A stretch of DNA of 64,000 nucleotides, taken from assembly GCA_950097015.1 (NCBI GenBank), contig CATNEN010000001.1:14384001-14448000 (forward strand). Direction: 5' to 3'. The position numbers were made by a program, and so were the translations under genes. This DNA is from Macrostomum hystrix. Lineage: Eukaryota; Animalia; Platyhelminthes. Position 1 is the first letter of the stretch, and the number at the start of each line of letters is the position of its first letter. Shown one piece after another: positions 14,906 through 23,080 of the stretch. The notes beneath the pieces are model-generated. The model was not told the DNA's origin and did no database searches. It saw nothing but the letters and a program-made list of their open reading frames with translations.

Positions 14906-16872
14906 CACCTCAAAAAGCAGACAGCCTATTTTATTGGCTTGTCAGACGCATTCTCTGTGGCATATACATTCGGCTTCCGCTGTTTCAGTCGCTGCCACGC
15001 GAGCAGGCAGCAGTCGTGCAGCAGCTCCACCAGCTCCAGTGCCGACAACAGCGACATGCCAAGGAAGAGGCCGAGCAGGCCGCCGACATCCGCTATCAAC
15101 GAATTGAAGCTGTAGGCGAGGGACAGGCGGACCTTCTGGCCGTGGAATTCGGCGGCTGAGATTTCCAGATAGAGCAGCGAATCGCGCACCTGCTGAAAGG
15201 TCGCATTGTTGACCAAGTACGACAGGCCAGGTGTGGGTCCGTTCTTGTTCACGTAATTGGTCGCGATGAAGTTCCTGAGGTATCCGTTCCAGCCTCTCTC
15301 CGTGGGCCACTGACTGGCTGAGTAGTCGTAGCTGTACGACCTCTGGTGGCAGAGCCCTTTCACGGCGCACAGTGAGGTCGCATTCACCAGAATGGCCTCT
15401 CGCTCTTTTATTAACGCGCTTTTCAAGATCGGACCGTTCGGGAACTGGGTCACATTGAAACACGATGGAATCTCACGATGCTCCCACAGAACTGGGTGTC
15501 GCCAAGGAGTGCAGTTGAATCTCTCAAAAGACAAGCGAGCCACCTCTCTGTAGAAGCACATCTCGGCTGTGTACTTGAAGCTCGTCTTTTCCATTGTGTA
15601 TGGGTCTAAGAAATCAGCCATTTTCTCATTGGGGAGACACACACCTTCTCCAATGTCTTTGTCATAAATTGTATCTTGCATCCTGATCGCTACTTGGTGG
15701 CTGAGGGACGGGCCAACGGACAATGACGGGTCTACATAAGACGGATGCTGTCCTCGAGGAGTTATGCGGATTATGAAACCTGCTGGCGTGGTGAAAGCAG
15801 TTCCGTAATCGAAGTCCAAATCAGGAGGCAGGAATTTCTCAGTGTCGAAATCCACCCCGATGGACTTGTGCACGGGAACTGGAAAAACGGGGTCGAGAAA
15901 CAGAGCGATCTGCAGGAAGCTCGAAGGACTCTGCAACACCCGGTAGTCCGAATCTTTGAAGTTCAGAACGAAGCAGTTGAGCAGGTCTGGAGTTCGATGA
16001 GTTCTAATATCTGGCTCGGTTATCGCGTTGAAGTAGTAATCTACCACGAGCTGGTTGGACTTGCGACCCAGCTTGTCTGACAGGAACTGGTAGGGCAGAG
16101 TGTTCGCCAGCCTGATGGCAAAGTTCTCAGCCAGCATGTCCGAGTCGTTGGCGCTGATTCCAGCGACACTCTCGTTGACCAGACGCTTGAAGTGACTCAG
16201 CTGAGCAATGTCCTCCTCGGTCAGAGTCAAGAAATTGCTGCCGGAAATGGGCTTCCGGCTGCAGATGTAGATGTCAGGGAACTCAAACTTGAGCTCGTTT
16301 GCTCTAACGTCAGTCTTGAGATCGGCCTTCCTGAAGCTCTCGTACATGGCATGGATTCGCACCGTGCAGACAGACAGTGATGCTAGAAACACAATGAGCC
16401 ACAGCGCTTTCACGTAGCGAGGCCTGTCGCTTGACAGTCGAGACAGGCTGTGAGTGGTGGCATCGTTTGCGTACTTGGCTAGTGCGTTGACCAGCATTCT
16501 TCACTGCGAGAGTTTGTGAGTTTCAGCTTCAGTCCTTGCGTGTGTGGTATTTAAAAATGCAGCCAGGTGTCAAATTTGCTAAGCAAATATTTCATTCGTT
16601 AAAATTTCGCTGGCTGCTTGATCGTAATTTTCAGCTAGCCCAAAATTTGTTTGATATCTTTCTGAGAGAAGCCACTTTGTGCACAAATGGGATTGGGTAA
16701 ACAGAAAACCTGATAATTATCCCAGGGCAGCATTATGTACTCGTACCTGTGGCAGTTCACTACGCGGAATGTCTATACTGTGAAAAGCTTTGCCATTCTA
16801 GAAAGCTAGATAGCTGACTGCTGTATCTGTCTCTATGTGTATATTTACAGTGTTTCGTATGAAAGTGCTTAT
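14906..16872 (-). repeat. Left arm of 1967-bp near-identical inverted duplication (partner 28499-30465)
   Basis: Identity runs from CACCTCAAAAAGCAG (14906) to GAAAGTGCTTAT (16872) as reverse complement of 28499-30465. Confidence 0.9.
14926..16497 (-). CDS. DEG/ENaC subunit B, intronless, 523 aa
   Basis: FPDIYIC, SASQWP, ADVGGLLGLFLGMSLLS; paralog of 7508-9142. Confidence 0.93.
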   Translation of the reverse strand: MLVNALAKYANDATTHSLSRLSSDRPRYVKALWLIVFLASLSVCTVRIHAMYESFRKADLKTDVRANELKFEFPDIYICSRKPISGSNFLTLTEEDIAQLSHFKRLVNESVAGISANDSDMLAENFAIRLANTLPYQFLSDKLGRKSNQLVVDYYFNAITEPDIRTHRTPDLLNCFVLNFKDSDYRVLQSPSSFLQIALFLDPVFPVPVHKSIGVDFDTEKFLPPDLDFDYGTAFTTPAGFIIRITPRGQHPSYVDPSLSVGPSLSHQVAIRMQDTIYDKDIGEGVCLPNEKMADFLDPYTMEKTSFKYTAEMCFYREVARLSFERFNCTPWRHPVLWEHREIPSCFNVTQFPNGPILKSALIKEREAILVNATSLCAVKGLCHQRSYSYDYSASQWPTERGWNGYLRNFIATNYVNKNGPTPGLSYLVNNATFQQVRDSLLYLEISAAEFHGQKVRLSLAYSFNSLIADVGGLLGLFLGMSLLSALELVELLHDCCLLAWQRLKQRKPNVYATENASDKPIK

Positions 16873-16992
16873 CTGCCAATTCGCAATGATGTGCCAATAG
16901 TGTATCAAAAGTTTTTAAGCATAGCTTTATTAAAAATGCGAGTACAATTTCAAGGTTTGTGGGTACTGACAAATCATCAGCGAGGAATTAAT

Positions 16993-17228
16993 TCTGCGTA
17001 TTCCGCTGACTCATGAGCACACTCACAGATATACCGTCAACAAGCACACACTCAGGCCGGAGTGTAACTCAAACTTGACTTTCTCATCTTCAGACAGTGT
17101 ACGCTCTCACTGTGCCTTGGAGGTAGGCCCTCTTCACGGCTGCGCCCCAAACGAATGTGGCCTCGCTGCGGAGTCGAGCTCAAGGACCAAGGTGCTCAGA
17201 AGCAAACACGTTAGACCGCTCTGCCCAT
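16993..17228 (-). mobile_element. SINE copy (reverse), just left of the YR cassettes
   Basis: Reverse complement of SINE body and head (GACTTTCTCATC, GGCTGCGCCCCAAA, GAGCTCAAGGACC). Confidence 0.75.
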
Positions 17229-17276
17229 TTATACACTAGGTAGCACAATGCACTAATCATGCACTAATGTAATACT

Positions 17277-19168
17277 ATAGCATGGTTTCCGAGGTCTTTA
17301 ATGTCATGGCCGAGGGCGCGAAGCGCCTCGAGGCCATAGACATTAAAAACCGAGGAAACCGTGCTATAGGGTTATTGTAGTACGATAATAGTTTCCCCAT
17401 CTATTTTAAAGATTTCTCTAAAAATGGATCAGTCCGAGGACGCGAAAGACCGCCTTACTGGGGAAACACCCATTAAAGACCGATGTCTATATTTCTTATG
17501 TCTATGGCCGAATATAGCGAGTTAAACTCTGGATCTTCTGGATCGAAATCACTTAACCTGATGGAAGGAGATAGATCCTACCCTAGCGGTCTGCTACATA
17601 TTGAATACGGAGACGTAGTTGGACTGACGAAGGACGAGATAGCCGCACGCATGGAAGCTGACAACGCTCTATTTGCTCTAGAAATGGACGCAGATAGAAT
17701 AGAAGAGATCGCGGCTGCATTCGCTGCGAGAATTGATGATAATACGCTTGCCGAACTGCTAGATGCAAAAGAGCCTCGAAACGAAGATATCGAGGCTATA
17801 ATGCAAGATCTTGATTTGGTTGAGAAAAAAACTGAACCACCAAGTGCGAGTCAGCAAGAAAAATGGGCTCTAGAAAAATTTTATTCGACCATGGAGTCCC
17901 TTCAACTTGAAGTCGACATTAAGACCTGCGCAGAGGAGCGATTGGCGGCCTGTATCCGAATTGCGTATGGAACTATCAAGCGCTCTGACGGTGGGTACTA
18001 TGCACCTGCTACTTTGCGCTGTTTCCGGGCCGGTTTGTATCGCTGGCTGCTTCGGACGCGTGGAGTGGATATCATATCTGACCAGCTGTTCAAAAAAGCG
18101 AATAATATGTTAAAAGTTGCTGCTAAACTGTTTCTGGAGAACGGCGGAGAAGTAAAGAGATTCAGCTCCATAGAAGACGATGATCTAGCTAAGCTTCGAA
18201 AGTATTTCGATCGGAGCACACCAGCAAAGTTACAGCATGAGTTCTATTACAATATGATGACTCACTTTGGGCTGCGTGCGAGAGAGTGGTTTCGACGCCT
18301 AACAGTTGAGTCGTTCGAAGAGATCATCACTGCATCTGGGCGAGAGGCTATCAAGTTGCGGCCGATGGCTACAAAGACTGATGGAGGACACTTGGAAAAT
18401 GCTGCAAAAAATACTAAACAGGTGCTGATGGTTTCTACCGGCTTACCTGACTGCCCTGTGGGCTGCTTCAATGACTACATGGAAAGGATCGCGAATGCTA
18501 AGAACAGAGAAGGTGTCGTGAACAGCATCGTCTTCATTCGGCCGAGGGCTAAGCCTAACGCAGACTCGTGGTATTTTGCCAAGCAGCCGGTTGGACACAA
18601 TACGCTGGGATCAATGATGCAGACAATATCTGAGAAGGCTGGACTGTCTAGAAAGTATGCGCCTCATTGCATCAGAGCAACGGTCGTGACGGAGCTGCAC
18701 AACGCCGGTTTTTCGCTGGAAGACATCGGCCATGTGACGGGACATCGTTCGGTTGTGTCAACCCAGCGGTACATAAGATACTCTAAGAAGAAGGAGTCCC
18801 AACTGGCATGCGTTTCGGATGCATTAAGTCGGGCTGGATGTGAACATAAAGTAAGTTCAGCTTCAACCACCAATCTGTCAACTTGCAGTTCTAGTTCTAG
18901 TGGCGGCTTCAGTGGTACGTTCACCGGCTGCACATTCAACATTTATCATAAGTGACATATTGATATTTTGCATGACATTTACGGAAAATGACCTGTTTTA
19001 CTTGTTAGAAATAATGTAATTTGTTTAGTTGTTTATACTTCTTCTAAATACAATTCTGTTTTCAATATTATAGCTTAACGACCATAGACAATTTGAGTTT
19101 AACCAATTTTTTGGATTACCCTAGGGAAATCCCAGGGACGCGAAAGACCGCTTTTATCGTACTACAAT
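17277..19168 (+). mobile_element. Crypton-like tyrosine-recombinase element 1: hairpin - IR - YR - IR
   Basis: Hairpin ~17271-17372 with GAA loop 17320-17322; perfect 16-bp IR TATTGTAGTACGATAA 17373-17388 / 19154-19169; 16-bp direct repeat GGACGCGAAAGACCGC 17438-17453 and 19136-19151. Confidence 0.8.
17483..18955 (+). CDS. Tyrosine recombinase, CryptonA/DUF3504-like, intact 490 aa
   Basis: YFDRSTPAKLQHEF..HFGLRARE (R), TKT (K), CPV, GHNTLGSMM, HCIRAT (HxxR), VTGHRS (H), QRY (Y). Confidence 0.9.
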   Translation: MSIFLMSMAEYSELNSGSSGSKSLNLMEGDRSYPSGLLHIEYGDVVGLTKDEIAARMEADNALFALEMDADRIEEIAAAFAARIDDNTLAELLDAKEPRNEDIEAIMQDLDLVEKKTEPPSASQQEKWALEKFYSTMESLQLEVDIKTCAEERLAACIRIAYGTIKRSDGGYYAPATLRCFRAGLYRWLLRTRGVDIISDQLFKKANNMLKVAAKLFLENGGEVKRFSSIEDDDLAKLRKYFDRSTPAKLQHEFYYNMMTHFGLRAREWFRRLTVESFEEIITASGREAIKLRPMATKTDGGHLENAAKNTKQVLMVSTGLPDCPVGCFNDYMERIANAKNREGVVNSIVFIRPRAKPNADSWYFAKQPVGHNTLGSMMQTISEKAGLSRKYAPHCIRATVVTELHNAGFSLEDIGHVTGHRSVVSTQRYIRYSKKKESQLACVSDALSRAGCEHKVSSASTTNLSTCSSSSSGGFSGTFTGCTFNIYHK

Positions 19169-19176
19169 AGTATATT

Positions 19177-20727
19177 ATTACCCAGGCTTTCAGGGCGATA
19201 ATGGGAAAGCCAGAGGGCGCCGAAGGCGCCCGAGGGATTTCTCATTATCGCCCGCAAAGCCTTGGTAATACTGTGATTGTACCATAGACTATGTGGCTGA
19301 GTAACAAGACAAACCATATCAGCCATAGACAAAATGATTTAATCACAAACTATACAGTTCAATTATAAGATAAAGAATAATGAAGCAAAGAGAAGCAAAC
19401 AACTAGAGAAAGAAGCTAGACTTCTTTATTCTTCACCGTCATATGCTAGATCGACCATGCTGAACTACAAAGCAATTTTAGAGAAAGAAATTTCTGGTCT
19501 CTCATCGGACGAACTTCAATTCGTGACCACGCTTAGTGATGGACGGCGCGAGGAAGAAGCTGTATATCAGTCCACGGGACTGCCAGTACTTGAGACGGAA
19601 ATGATTGAGAGTTTTCTGGCTGAAGTGTCCACATGTAAGGCTTTGACTGACGAAAATCTGAATGAAATTGCCAAGATGGAGGACTTAGGCAAAGTCTGGT
19701 CTACTGAGAAGGCAACAGCTACGTACGCCGCTCGTTTCCGAAAATTTCTTGACGATCGAGGACTGCCATCGCAACTTGAGACAATACCGACTCGATATTT
19801 ATGTCACTATCTGCGCCTGTATTTTTCGGTAGTTAAAAAGGATGATGGAACGGCGTACAGTTGCAGTTCGCTGGTATGCATGCGCGCAGGAATCTACCGG
19901 TATTTGAAGAATTTACGAGGTTTGGATATCATCGGCAATGTTGAATTTAGCGCTTTTGAGAAGACTTTCAAAGCTGCTCTTACGTACTCTCTGAAGAAAC
20001 CTGTTTCGGTGATGGATGGTGACGGTGGGTATCGAGCATTGGAGCCTGAAGATTTGGCGTTGTTGCATGCGTACTTCGACCGGAGCTCGCCACAGAAACT
20101 GCAACAGGAAGTCTTCTTTGTCCTGAGCTCACACTTTGCCTTTCGTGGACGTGAATGGATTCGAGCGCTTGAGAAAAAAGATGTCATTCTGCGGGAATCC
20201 ACCGGAGGTATGACGTGCGTTGACTTGCAGAAAGAAAAGAAAGAAAAGTGTGTGTCCGCCGATGCCCCTCGGTCCAATCGCGAGATTGGGATTTTTCCTG
20301 TGCAAGACAAATCTGTGCCCAGTTGAAGCGATCAAACTGTATCTTTCGAAGCTTCCATCTGAGAACGGCTCTCTGTTTCCCAGGCCTGCCGTCAAGTGGC
20401 AGAATGGAGCATGGTATTGCCCAAAAGATGTATTGGGCAAGAACACATTGGCCAGCATGATGAAGACGATCTCGAAAGCGGCCAGGCTCTCGCGGGACTA
20501 CACCAACCATTCGATCCGCGCAACAACCATAACAAACCTGTCTTCTGCTGGATTCAGTGCCGAAGCGATTCAAACCGTCTCTGGGCACAAAAAGGTGGAT
20601 AGTGTTGTCCGTTATACAAAGCGGACAACAGTGGCCCAGAAGCGCGCATTGTCTTCGGCTATCACAGATAGTCTACATGCCTCTCTGAATATCAGCCCGC
20701 CCGATAGCCACGTAGTCATGGTACAAT
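19177..20727 (+). mobile_element. Crypton-like tyrosine-recombinase element 2: hairpin - IR - YR - IR
   Basis: 46-bp-arm hairpin 19176-19270 with GAA loop 19222-19224; IR ATTGTACCATAGACTATGTGGCT 19276-19298 / AGCCACGTAGTCATGGTACAAT 20706-20727 (1 mismatch, 1 indel). Confidence 0.8.
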
Positions 20728-20744
20728 GCTACTATTGCTTCTGA
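19457..20744 (+). pseudogene. Tyrosine recombinase 2 split by one frameshift near 20315
   Basis: ORF 19457-20326 (YFDRSSPQKLQQE..HFAFRGREW) continues in ORF 20220-20744 (CPVEAI..GKNTLASMM..NHSIRAT..SGHK..VRY). Confidence 0.85.
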
Positions 20745-21863
20745 GGCTATAAAAGTTTAATTTCTATAGTTTTGTGCAATCGGCATAAATTCATATGTTA
20801 CTTGAAAAGAGCTTAATAAACAAGTTTTGTTAACCAACAGAAGCTAGTTTTGCTGTCCCTCCAATGATCTGAAAAGTGGGGCGATGGTCTTTCCTGGAAG
20901 AAAAATGTTTATTCGTCTCCTGGGAATTCTCGAGCATGCTTCCAAGTCACTGGGCAGATCGATCTAAGTGGCCGAAAAAATGATCGAAGAACAACTACTG
21001 CTACTGCTGCTGCTGCTGCTGCGACTCCTTGAGTTGGACCGATGTCTCTGGAGTACCGCCCCGGCCTCTTGCCCCAGGACACGGCCCTACAACTAGAAGG
21101 GAAAGTTAAAAAGATTATCAAGCTAGGCGGTCAGAAATTCTTTATGAAGTTACCAAGCAGCTCTTTGGTGGATCCTCGTTAAGCTTTGGATCAGTCCATT
21201 TGGGAGCTGCCGAGTGTTAAAGTGTGCCAATTTTTGTTATACAGCGACTACAAGATGACCTATCTCTAGAGTCTTGAAACTCATCATTTACTGCTTGGAG
21301 CGAGGCAAGCAAGTTCACTCGGTGCTGAGGAGTTTCTCAATTTGCTATCCAATCATTGGCCTAGTTCTCTTCTGGCTTGGGGGGCCCACAGCTAGAGTTT
21401 AGCCTGCAGCGATAATACACTGCGCTCTATATTATGTGTGTATTTGTACAGCACGCGCACTTGTGCTTGTCTCCCTCTATAATTTCATTTGGCGCAGAGG
21501 TCTCATTAGGGACAGGCTCCTGAGTCACTGCGATAATAAGAAAACTTATTCCAGTGCATTATAAGGTGTACGAGAGGTTTATAATCTGCGCCAAGATGGT
21601 GGGTTCTAGAAAATTACCACGTACCACTGGCTTGCTACAATAGGTCGATAATGACTGCTGCGCGAATTGACGATAAATCTATCGATTCCCCAAAAATCCG
21701 AAATCCCTATTTTTGGGTTCTGAAAATTATTCGTCTACTTTAAAAGCGTCTGTAGTTTTTTTAAACTGGTGTTTGATATCATCGATATCCTCCATGGTAA
21801 CAAAAGAATTGCTTCACAAAAATCTTCAGACTTCTTCGGGACATCCTTAATCCTACATCTCCA

Positions 21864-21995
21864 GCATCCTTCTGAAGTATCTCCAACATCCTTCTGAAGT
21901 ATCTCCAACATCCTTCTGAAGTATCTCCAACATCCTTCTGAAGTATCTCCAACATCCTTCTGAAGTATCTCCAAAATCCTTCTCAGGTATCTCGA
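21864..21995. repeat. 22-bp tandem repeat (CATCCTTCTGAAGTATCTCCAA)n, ~6 units
   Basis: Direct inspection. Confidence 0.9.
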
Positions 21996-22060: not shown

Positions 22061-23080
22061 ACCTGACAACGTGCCACCGCCTCCCCTATCGCCTAACGAC
22101 AGGATCCACTTCGCAGCGGAACTCGCCAAACCGACCAACCGGGAGGATCCCCCGCACGTCAGACGCCAAGCCGCACTGGAGACGCTGGACCGGCTTCCGG
22201 AACCCGCCTTGGAACTCTGGACCGACGGCTCGGCCTCCGGAGGCACCAATAGAGGCGGATCCGGTGCGGCCCTGTTCATCCGCGGAGCCGCGCCAATCTA
22301 CCTGACTGCTCCAGCGGGCGCTTTCAGCTCTTCTTTTAGGGCGGAGGAGTGTGCCCTCCGCATTGGTCTCCTCGCAGCCCTGGAGCGCGTCCCATGGCCC
22401 AGTACGGCAGAACTGCGTTGCGCCACTGATTCGCAGGCCCTCATCCGATCGCTCGAACAAGGCCCGCACTCTCACCTGTCCCCCTGCTGCCGGGACATCT
22501 GGCGCCTCCTCCTCAAAGTCCCCGCGGACCACCACGTGACTATCCAATGGGTCCCAGGACACTGTGACCTGAGGCGCAACGATCTGGCGGACAACCTTGC
22601 AAAAGACGCCGCTAGACTCCCACAAGACCAAGCGGAAATCGACCTAAACAGTGCCGAGTCCGCGATCCGCGGCACACTGGCCGCCGAGGCTCGCGCTGCC
22701 TAAGAAGCGGACCCGCGCTGCCGGACGCACCGCGCTGCCTTCCGCGACGACCGCAGATCCGAGGCGACTCTCAGCAGACGCGAGCTGATCACGCTAGCGC
22801 AACTTCGCACGGGCCACTCGCCTCTGCTGGCCCAGTACCGCCACCGGATTGACCAAGAACAGCCCGCGTCCTGCGGGCACTGCGGACACCAGGAGGAGGA
22901 CCTGAAGCATGTGATGCTGGAATGCCCAGCTCACGCCCAGACCCGCAACCGCGTCCTCGGCCCTAACCCGACGCTGGCCATCCTCTCCGATGACGGCCCC
23001 CGTGTCCTGTCCTATCTCCAGGCGATAGGGTCGCTGACACGACCCCCGGACCTGCCCGGCCAGGAACGTCTAACTAACTA
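22061..23080 (+). mobile_element. 5'-truncated non-LTR retrotransposon (RNase H + C-terminal CCHC; I-group-like)
   Basis: WTDGSA..AE..TDSQA..QWVPGH..NDLADNLAK; LAQLRTGH..CGHC..H...EC after an in-frame TAA at 22701; (TAAC)n tail; 12-bp TSD ACATGCTTCAAT 22049-22060 / 23081-23092. Confidence 0.9.

Follow-up and report, generated by a model that had tools for sequence, protein, structure and literature searches.

Two CryptonA-type DNA transposons, here termed unit 1 and unit 2, lie head to tail in a 64,000-nt stretch of the Macrostomum hystrix genome (contig CATNEN010000001.1, positions 14,384,001 to 14,448,000; this whole stretch is called the window and supplies the coordinates used below), and each of them encodes solely a Cre-like tyrosine recombinase. 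Comparison of genomic copies and insertion sites shows both to be recently active Cryptons crossing over at an AAT triplet, and marks as their cis module a hairpin at the left end together with the inverted repeats B, located behind the hairpin, and B', located at the right end. The common layout is AAT, spacer, imperfect hairpin of ~95 nt (arms A and A'), spacer, B starting with ATT, recombinase gene, and B' ending with AAT. Such an end structure, in which hairpin and B could serve as a splint for the two termini, is an addition to the known Crypton type and appears to be without a match in published Crypton descriptions; a full-text literature search for Crypton plus hairpin returned no description of it, Repbase and Dfam entries lying outside the comparison. 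The parts of the two units are as follows.

17266..19168 (+): unit 1, whole CryptonA-type element, 1903 bp, delimited by the boundaries of genomic copies
17266..17268 (+): left AAT of unit 1, crossover or microhomology triplet; all copies open with it, while their flanks are unrelated
17269..17274 (+): left spacer of unit 1, GTAATA, read from the sequence; without complementarity to the internal spacer in the joined-end alignment
17275..17369 (+): hairpin 1, with arm A at 17275-17319, arm A' at 17323-17369 and a GC stem closed by a GAA loop
17370..17373 (+): internal spacer of unit 1, GGTT, from the sequence and the joined-end alignment
17374..17391 (+): B of unit 1, ATTGTAGTACGATAATAG, beginning with ATT; inverted copy of the right end
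17483..18955 (+): open reading frame (ORF) of the tyrosine recombinase YR1, 490 aa, matching Pfam Phage_integrase and DUF3504
19151..19168 (+): B' of unit 1, ending with TACAAT; 17 of 18 positions complementary to B
19166..20727 (+): unit 2, defective copy of 1562 bp from a family with a full length of 1872 bp; the same ends recur in copies of full length and in the derivatives of 266 bp
19169..19175 (+): left spacer of unit 2, AGTATAT, from the sequence and the joined-end alignment
19176..19270 (+): hairpin 2, with arms at 19176-19221 and 19225-19270, a GAA loop, and an AGA-over-GAG internal loop adjoining the GC stem
19271..19275 (+): internal spacer of unit 2, CTGTG, from the sequence and the joined-end alignment
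19276..19285 (+): B of unit 2, ATTGTACCAT; 10 of 10 positions complementary to 20718-20727
19457..20744 (+): remnant of the recombinase YR2 in two frames, 19457-20326 and 20220-20744, from the ORF list and Pfam matches
20718..20727 (+): B' of unit 2, ATGGTACAAT, forming the right end; from copy boundaries and loose ends starting at 20728 in another public run

The assignment to the animal-type Cryptons (CryptonA) follows from the gene content. YR1 was recognised by the Pfam profiles Phage_integrase (PF00589; 2.7e-11) and DUF3504 (PF12012; 30.3 bits with a cut-off of 29.7), and the fragments of YR2 match the same families, with a weak match to the QRICH1 domain in addition. In a search of 1.84 billion representatives, 4212 clusters were found to be related to the recombinase, and R265, K298, H395, R398, H421 and Y430 of YR1 are conserved among 64 relatives. 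The AlphaFold model of YR1 (predicted local distance difference test, pLDDT, 83.9) takes the form of a two-domain Cre-like clamp; the structure search placed it closest to Cre bound to loxP (template modelling score, TM, ~0.7 on the target), with integron integrase, XerH, Tn1549 integrase and domesticated QRICH1 ranking below Cre. Inspection of the ORF list and Pfam matches revealed no further ORF with a transposition-related domain within 17266-19168, and no reverse transcriptase (RT) or second transposition gene in either unit. The initial annotation, which was made from the letters of the window, had described RT-less tyrosine-recombinase elements, and this content, a recombinase alone, bears that description out. 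Behind a low-complexity linker, YR1 carries a short conserved C-terminal tail of the form F-S-G-[ST]-F-x-x-C-x-F-N (residues 474-488, ~18902-18946) that is common to its closest protein relatives P0001 and P0002 and to the relatives P0004, P0005 and P0007; its cysteine is invariant in an eight-sequence alignment, and model confidence is low there.

The ends of unit 1 were set by its genomic copies. The 220-Mb assembly contains no fewer than 12 long copies, all of which extend from the left AAT to the terminal TACAAT (boundaries at query positions 66/67 and 1969); two of these, full length and 100% identical, are located at unrelated sites. The left end had previously been put at 17271; from the copy boundaries, it is the AAT at 17266-17268. 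That A and B' stand at real element ends was confirmed in the same way, the copies being bounded by the left AAT on one side and by B' on the other. Contigs from further public runs, in part labelled as other organisms, diverge from the window exactly at 17265/6, 19165-8 and 20728. The AAT at 19166-19168 is common to both units, being the right AAT of unit 1 and the left AAT of unit 2.

A filled and an empty site could be compared at locus L057, where a 266-bp derivative sits within a copy of unit 1: the empty target has one AAT, and the filled site has AAT on both sides. Because the empty site has this single AAT, the terminal triplet is a microhomology common to element and target, in agreement with the Crypton model of Goodwin, rather than a larger duplication. 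The initial annotation had set the units apart from classical Cryptons with their short terminal direct repeats; this contrast does not hold, as the window elements carry the AAT repeat too. In 9 of 9 copies of unit 1, the left AAT is preceded by C or T. The target logo derived from unique flanks is Y-AAT-G in the case of unit 1 and A-Y-AAT-n-n-T in that of unit 2, and each logo resembles the element's own joined ends (TAC-AAT-GTA and TAC-AAT-AGT, respectively). Insertions frequently hit the right-end AAT of an element already in place, as seen in the window, where unit 1 is followed by unit 2, and likewise at L053, with two stacked derivatives, and at L052, where a unit 2 derivative comes after a third family. 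An integron-like cassette array was considered for this head-to-tail stacking and rejected, insertion at the AAT of resident ends accounting for it. At L051 and L058, a unit 2 derivative is inserted exactly at the internal ATT of the third family, between A' and B; from the position of these insertions, the internal site is accepted as a recombination partner. The 30-mer of the joined ends of unit 1 is absent from the assembly, and for unit 2 the chromosomes contain two head-to-tail junctions.

The copy of unit 2 in the window has lost 2 bp after 20313 and ~310 bp near 20685; an intact protein of this family, 459 aa long, is encoded at L032:1792-3168. The proteins of the two units share 29-33% identity across ~370 residues. 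Many non-coding derivatives of 266 bp are present in the genome, and these retain the left 133 bp (AAT, spacer, hairpin, spacer and B) and the B' end, and nothing else. The internal junction of unit 2 type occurs in 47 genomic copies that are identical over 32 nt, which points to a recent amplification. Every copy that has a left end has the hairpin as this end, and in the short derivatives the hairpin is invariably accompanied by B and by the B' end that matches. Movement of the hairpin on its own as a miniature inverted-repeat transposable element, named beforehand as an outcome that would overturn the reading, is excluded by the copy boundaries and by the make-up of the derivatives.

Two observations concern individual copies of unit 2. 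The identical full-length copies L032 and L033 (C38:24778040 and C38:24766738) are 11.3 kb apart; since their flanks are identical as well, the pair is a segmental duplication and not the result of separate insertions. Locus L045 (C32:850480-854117) holds a truncated copy at ~1145-2271 in which the hairpin-plus-B module is oriented opposite to the 3' half of the gene; the join of this rearranged copy lies inside the ORF near element position 930, and it is the sole copy seen with a reversed module.

The layout is not confined to the window. When JGI metagenome contigs were searched with a profile, six contigs of ~2 kb with relatives at 30-43% identity emerged, three of which (L061, L062 and L063) keep the order of AAT, spacer of 0-4 nt, long hairpin, and a B starting with ATT directly after A', with a B' ending in AAT ~1.8 kb downstream; their recombinases are 38-43% identical to the query profile. 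In a set of loci of the M. hystrix genome, a covariance model built from five hairpins uncovered two more hairpin families (L045:95-218 and L051/L052). The genome contains at least 145 recombinase loci; run on all of it and compared by coordinates, the model also placed hairpins on the same strand as five diverged recombinase genes with 34-45% identity to YR1 (C1:5966432, C2:860954, C38:14453242, C1:2443525 and C7:11715190), at distances of 590-720 nt upstream of them; the genome-wide count is a lower bound, 150 of 12,962 candidates having been scored. A scan of viral contigs gave no finding. Among the remaining metagenome relatives, L066 (30% identity) shows a perfect 20-bp inverted repeat (215-234 and 2050-2069) that surrounds both the hairpin, a nested palindromic region at 237-476, and the recombinase gene, an order of parts unlike that of the window elements; upstream of the genes of L064 and L065, no hairpin was detected.

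The hairpins, inverted repeats and junctions quoted in the initial annotation, and the layout of both units, are all present in the sequence, and both hairpins and both B/B' pairs were recovered independently by a repeat finder, which reported B of unit 1 as 95% complementary to 19151-19169 (inverted repeat I3). Folding gave -37 kcal/mol for hairpin 1 (z = -8.3) and -38 kcal/mol for hairpin 2 (z = -8.45), and in neither case was any of 200 shuffled sequences equally stable. In the hairpin alignment, 32 of 49 consensus pairs keep their pairing via double-sided changes in at least one of five sequences; by these compensatory changes, the pairing itself is under selection. The earlier statement that structure rather than sequence is conserved thus stands for the layout, which is kept via compensatory change, and went too far for the remainder, the proteins of the two units retaining 29-33% identity and the hairpins sharing motifs.

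Two internal loops of 2x2 nt are kept in position. The loop beside the GC-rich apical stem is present in 7 of 7 families, as AGA over GAG in unit 2 and its relative and as GA over GA in the others, and the lower loop is GA over GA in 4 of 7 families. These loops come from a single word, CCGAGG or a close variant, that both arms carry on one and the same strand; in hairpin 1, CGAGG at 17290, 17311, 17329 and 17351 generates the two GA-over-GA loops. At the apex, a GC stem is capped by GAA, GTTA or GTCA, and the apex of unit 1 reads GCGAAGC, a DNA mini-hairpin known for its unusual stability. The purine-purine loops are kept on the coding strand only, as the opposite strand would have pyrimidine-pyrimidine mismatches at these places. 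With the covariance model, the coding strand scored 110-129 bits versus 55-70 bits for the opposite strand (109.6 versus 55.5 bits for unit 1 and 115.4 versus 60.1 bits for unit 2). This asymmetry is suggestive and does not amount to proof.

Predicted joined ends (B'-AAT-spacer-A), as would occur in a circle or a head-to-tail pair, were aligned with the reverse complement of the internal A'-spacer-ATT-B segment for five elements. The arms are the same in 5 of 5 elements. No sequence relationship is seen between the spacers, that of the joined ends exceeding the internal one by exactly 2 nt in all five aligned loci (joined-end/internal spacer: unit 1, 6/4 nt; unit 2, 7/5 nt; L061, 4/2 nt; L062, 2/0 nt; L063, 2/0 nt). 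For the third family, spacers of 7 and 5 nt were read from the sequence. The expectation that joining the ends would give the reverse complement of the internal segment was therefore right for the arms and wrong for the spacers, which differ in sequence and length. By this geometry, one strand of the joined ends can form a continuous fold-back in which the B'-B helix is stacked on A-A', with the crossover AAT located at a small bulge. The inequality of the spacers argues against exchange between the joined-end and the internal site. A palindromic, loxP-like core (GTACTAC-AAT-GTAATAC) was noticed by eye in the joined ends of unit 1, and not in those of unit 2 or L063.

Three short features of the two units may be added. 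A 19-bp direct repeat (GGACGCGAAAGACCGC..., 95% identical) is situated just within both ends of unit 1, at 17438-17456 and 19136-19154, its right-hand copy overlapping the beginning of B'. A TATA-like stretch is found 3' of B. The 8-mer CCATAGAC occurs 6 times in the window (1.3 expected), with 5 of the 6 occurrences at subterminal positions inside the two elements (17334, 17500 on the minus strand, 19082, 19282 and 19323); it is present in L032, was not found in the metagenome relatives L061-L062, and may be a candidate accessory binding site of the local families.

On this basis, we propose that the coding strand would fold back on itself, with hairpin and B serving as a splint inside the element: they would keep its two ends in contact and create, around the AAT, the duplex arms to which the recombinase binds. 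The recombinase would exchange strands at this triplet and release the element, which would later insert at Y-AAT targets. That a functional fold-back of some kind exists is, in our judgement, an even chance. More tentatively, and possible rather than probable, animal Cryptons may transpose via the folded coding strand, only this strand being exchanged, so that a single-stranded circle would result, integrate at Y-AAT and be completed by replication. In this one-strand version, the donor copy would be kept and the copy gain of Cryptons would be explained. Active Cryptons excise cleanly yet rise in copy number (PMC9977147), and retention of the donor would account for this combination.

Several points weigh against a folded substrate. 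We know of no tyrosine-recombinase reaction on folded single strands in eukaryotes, and the predicted model of the recombinase resembles an ordinary Cre-type clamp that binds duplex DNA. The assembled contigs of public runs revealed no molecule that was circular or single-stranded or had joined ends. With standard DNA parameters, the stability advantage of the coding strand over the opposite one is only 1.4-3.7 kcal/mol, and the counts of G-T versus A-C mismatches (7 versus 3) do not differ significantly. Covariation in a DNA palindrome fits a folded single strand, a cruciform or an RNA hairpin alike and cannot tell them apart, and the four CGAGG motifs could be protein-binding sites in duplex DNA. 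Finally, 3 of the 6 metagenome relatives (L064-L066) are without the same order of parts, or are perhaps incomplete.

The classical Crypton cycle in duplex DNA, in which a double-stranded circle is formed via the two AATs, would require no folding at all; hairpin arms, CGAGG motifs and B would then be accessory sites, bound by a host factor or by the recombinase itself and comparable to the arm-type sites known from phage integrases, that help in assembling or orienting the synapse. The Cre-like duplex clamp of the predicted model is what this cycle would use, the insertions resemble ordinary site-specific integration at AAT with partial similarity of the flanks, the internal site serves as an ordinary chromosomal target at L051 and L058, and CGAGG occurs in unit 1 four times in direct orientation, ~two helical turns apart; moreover, Goodwin's circle model fits active CryptonF elements (PMC9977147). 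Binding sites, however, should keep their sequence, whereas the 32 of 49 pairs maintain pairing by double change as the sequence drifts. The inner CGAGG spacing of ~10 bp in L045 versus 18 bp in unit 1 is better explained by symmetry about the apex than by helical phasing, and the duplex cycle offers no reason for B abutting A' such that B'-B stacks on A-A'. We regard the duplex model with accessory sites as somewhat improbable and, at the same time, as a rival that stays serious. If the hairpin acted instead as RNA, as a structured leader or as a small-RNA precursor transcribed from the coding strand and regulating the recombinase gene, its terminal position would be incidental. The conserved loops and the higher model score on the coding strand would suit such a role, and tandem G-A pairs are stable in RNA as well. 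Yet the hairpin comes at the very start of the element, beyond the reach of an internal promoter, the TATA-like stretch coming after B; it is retained in the non-coding 266-bp derivatives; AAT and ATT directly border its base; G-U pairs are rare, at ~3% of the cells in the hairpin alignment; and an Rfam scan gave microRNA-like matches at chance level only. An RNA function is considered quite unlikely.

Two further explanations address the inverted repeats and the internal complement. B and B', with their AAT/ATT triplets, bracket the gene as inverted repeats and could in principle be sites for flipping it, as an on/off inversion switch, and an invertible B..B' segment had been offered in the initial annotation as the alternative. 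Inverted-allele junctions numbered 0 for unit 1 and 0 for unit 2 in the genome versus 47 normal junctions of unit 2, full-length copies are all colinear from hairpin to ORF, and the lone reversed module, at L045, is a truncated rearrangement; a switch of this kind is barely credible. Alternatively, the units might be non-autonomous relatives of DIRS elements, copied through RNA by an RT acting in trans, with the internal complement regenerating and joining the ends of the complementary DNA as in DIRS1. An internal segment complementary to the joined ends is indeed what constitutes the DIRS internal complementary region (PMC13465315), and RT-related fragments are found nearby in the genome, as is an RNase H-like ORF at 22071-22703. 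The elements are, however, 1.9 kb long without RT or RNase H, and their recombinase groups with DUF3504/CryptonA proteins, whereas DIRS recombinases do not match DUF3504 at all (Kojima and Jurka, PMC3212892). They have no inverted terminal repeats (ITRs), the left terminus being arm A and not a copy of B', and a hairpin at the extreme 5' end would not be transcribable from an internal promoter. This origin is very improbable, and of the DIRS-like internal complementary region first proposed for the units, the logic is retained as an analogy only, while membership fails for want of RT and ITRs.

As to the surroundings, the sequence directly left of unit 1 (16968-17260) is an extremely high-copy repeat with many loose ends and variants; its summed contig depth in run X1 is ~1.7e5, versus 80-800 in neighbouring sequence. 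An uninterrupted ORF of 523 aa on the minus strand (14926-16497), ~770 bp from the repeat cluster, looks by eye like a degenerin/ENaC-type channel and, judged in the same manner, like a host gene. Downstream of both Cryptons, 22-nt units repeated in tandem (repeat family D1, 21835-21988) are followed by the RNase H-like ORF mentioned above, which is probably part of a retroelement fragment.

No order of eukaryotic DNA transposons is less well understood than the Cryptons, whose ends have been called featureless and whose mechanism has been argued by analogy. The module described here supplies exact ends, a minimal cis-element in the form of the 266-bp derivative, a defined crossover triplet and the prediction that coding-strand pairing is needed. 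If the fold-back is functional, tyrosine recombination on folded substrates would extend from bacteria to animals, and a hint at the origin of the DIRS internal complementary region would be obtained; the recombinase, small and with a defined target, could then also be useful as a tool. If the single-strand version is true, animal Cryptons would be to eukaryotes what integron cassettes, CTX phage and the strand-biased elements are to bacteria.

In comparison with known systems, the window elements share with CryptonA (Goodwin et al. 2003; Kojima and Jurka 2011, PMC3212892) a single DUF3504 tyrosine recombinase, a size of ~2 kb, the absence of RT and DDE transposase, and non-autonomous derivatives. 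A further common trait is the short direct repeat, here AAT, found at either end, which is due to target microhomology and not to duplication. Animal Cryptons have been reported to be without terminal repeats of any sort (PMC3212892), and in a curation guide, the short direct repeat is the sole distinguishing Crypton feature (PMC8969392); the window elements differ in having, at one terminus, a ~95-nt hairpin plus an inverted copy of the other end. With DIRS1-type retrotransposons they have in common an internal segment complementary to the adjoined termini and a tyrosine recombinase as integrase; they lack RT, RNase H, methyltransferase and ITRs, and the complement here directly adjoins the left end, so that half of it forms a local hairpin. 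The yeast 2-micron FLP/FRT system likewise has a eukaryotic tyrosine-recombinase gene bracketed by inverted recombination sites. FLP inverts its segment in plasmid amplification, whereas no inverted allele was found here and the related sites have unequal spacers.

The strand-biased circularizing elements of Vibrio copy out one strand while the donor stays occupied (PMC9345347), which is the behaviour that the folded-splint model would predict; they differ in being bacterial and multi-gene, with 19-bp terminal inverted repeats, 6-bp spacers and no terminal hairpin (PMC9345347). A structural parallel is offered by attC and CTX attP(+), going by those passages of PMC9345347 that cite Bouvier 2005 and Val 2005. 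There, too, the halves of an imperfect palindrome pair within one strand and build duplex arms, structure is kept while sequence drifts, a bulged or unpaired centre lies by a conserved triplet, and an asymmetry marks the strand. In the present case, the host is an animal, the fold-back spans both element ends and is complete only when these are joined, it is a prediction from sequence, and the structure search placed the enzyme closest to Cre, ahead of IntI. Common to the Crypton module and attC-type sites is a palindrome that is kept by structure over sequence, here with an extrahelical excess of 2 nt on the joined-end side.

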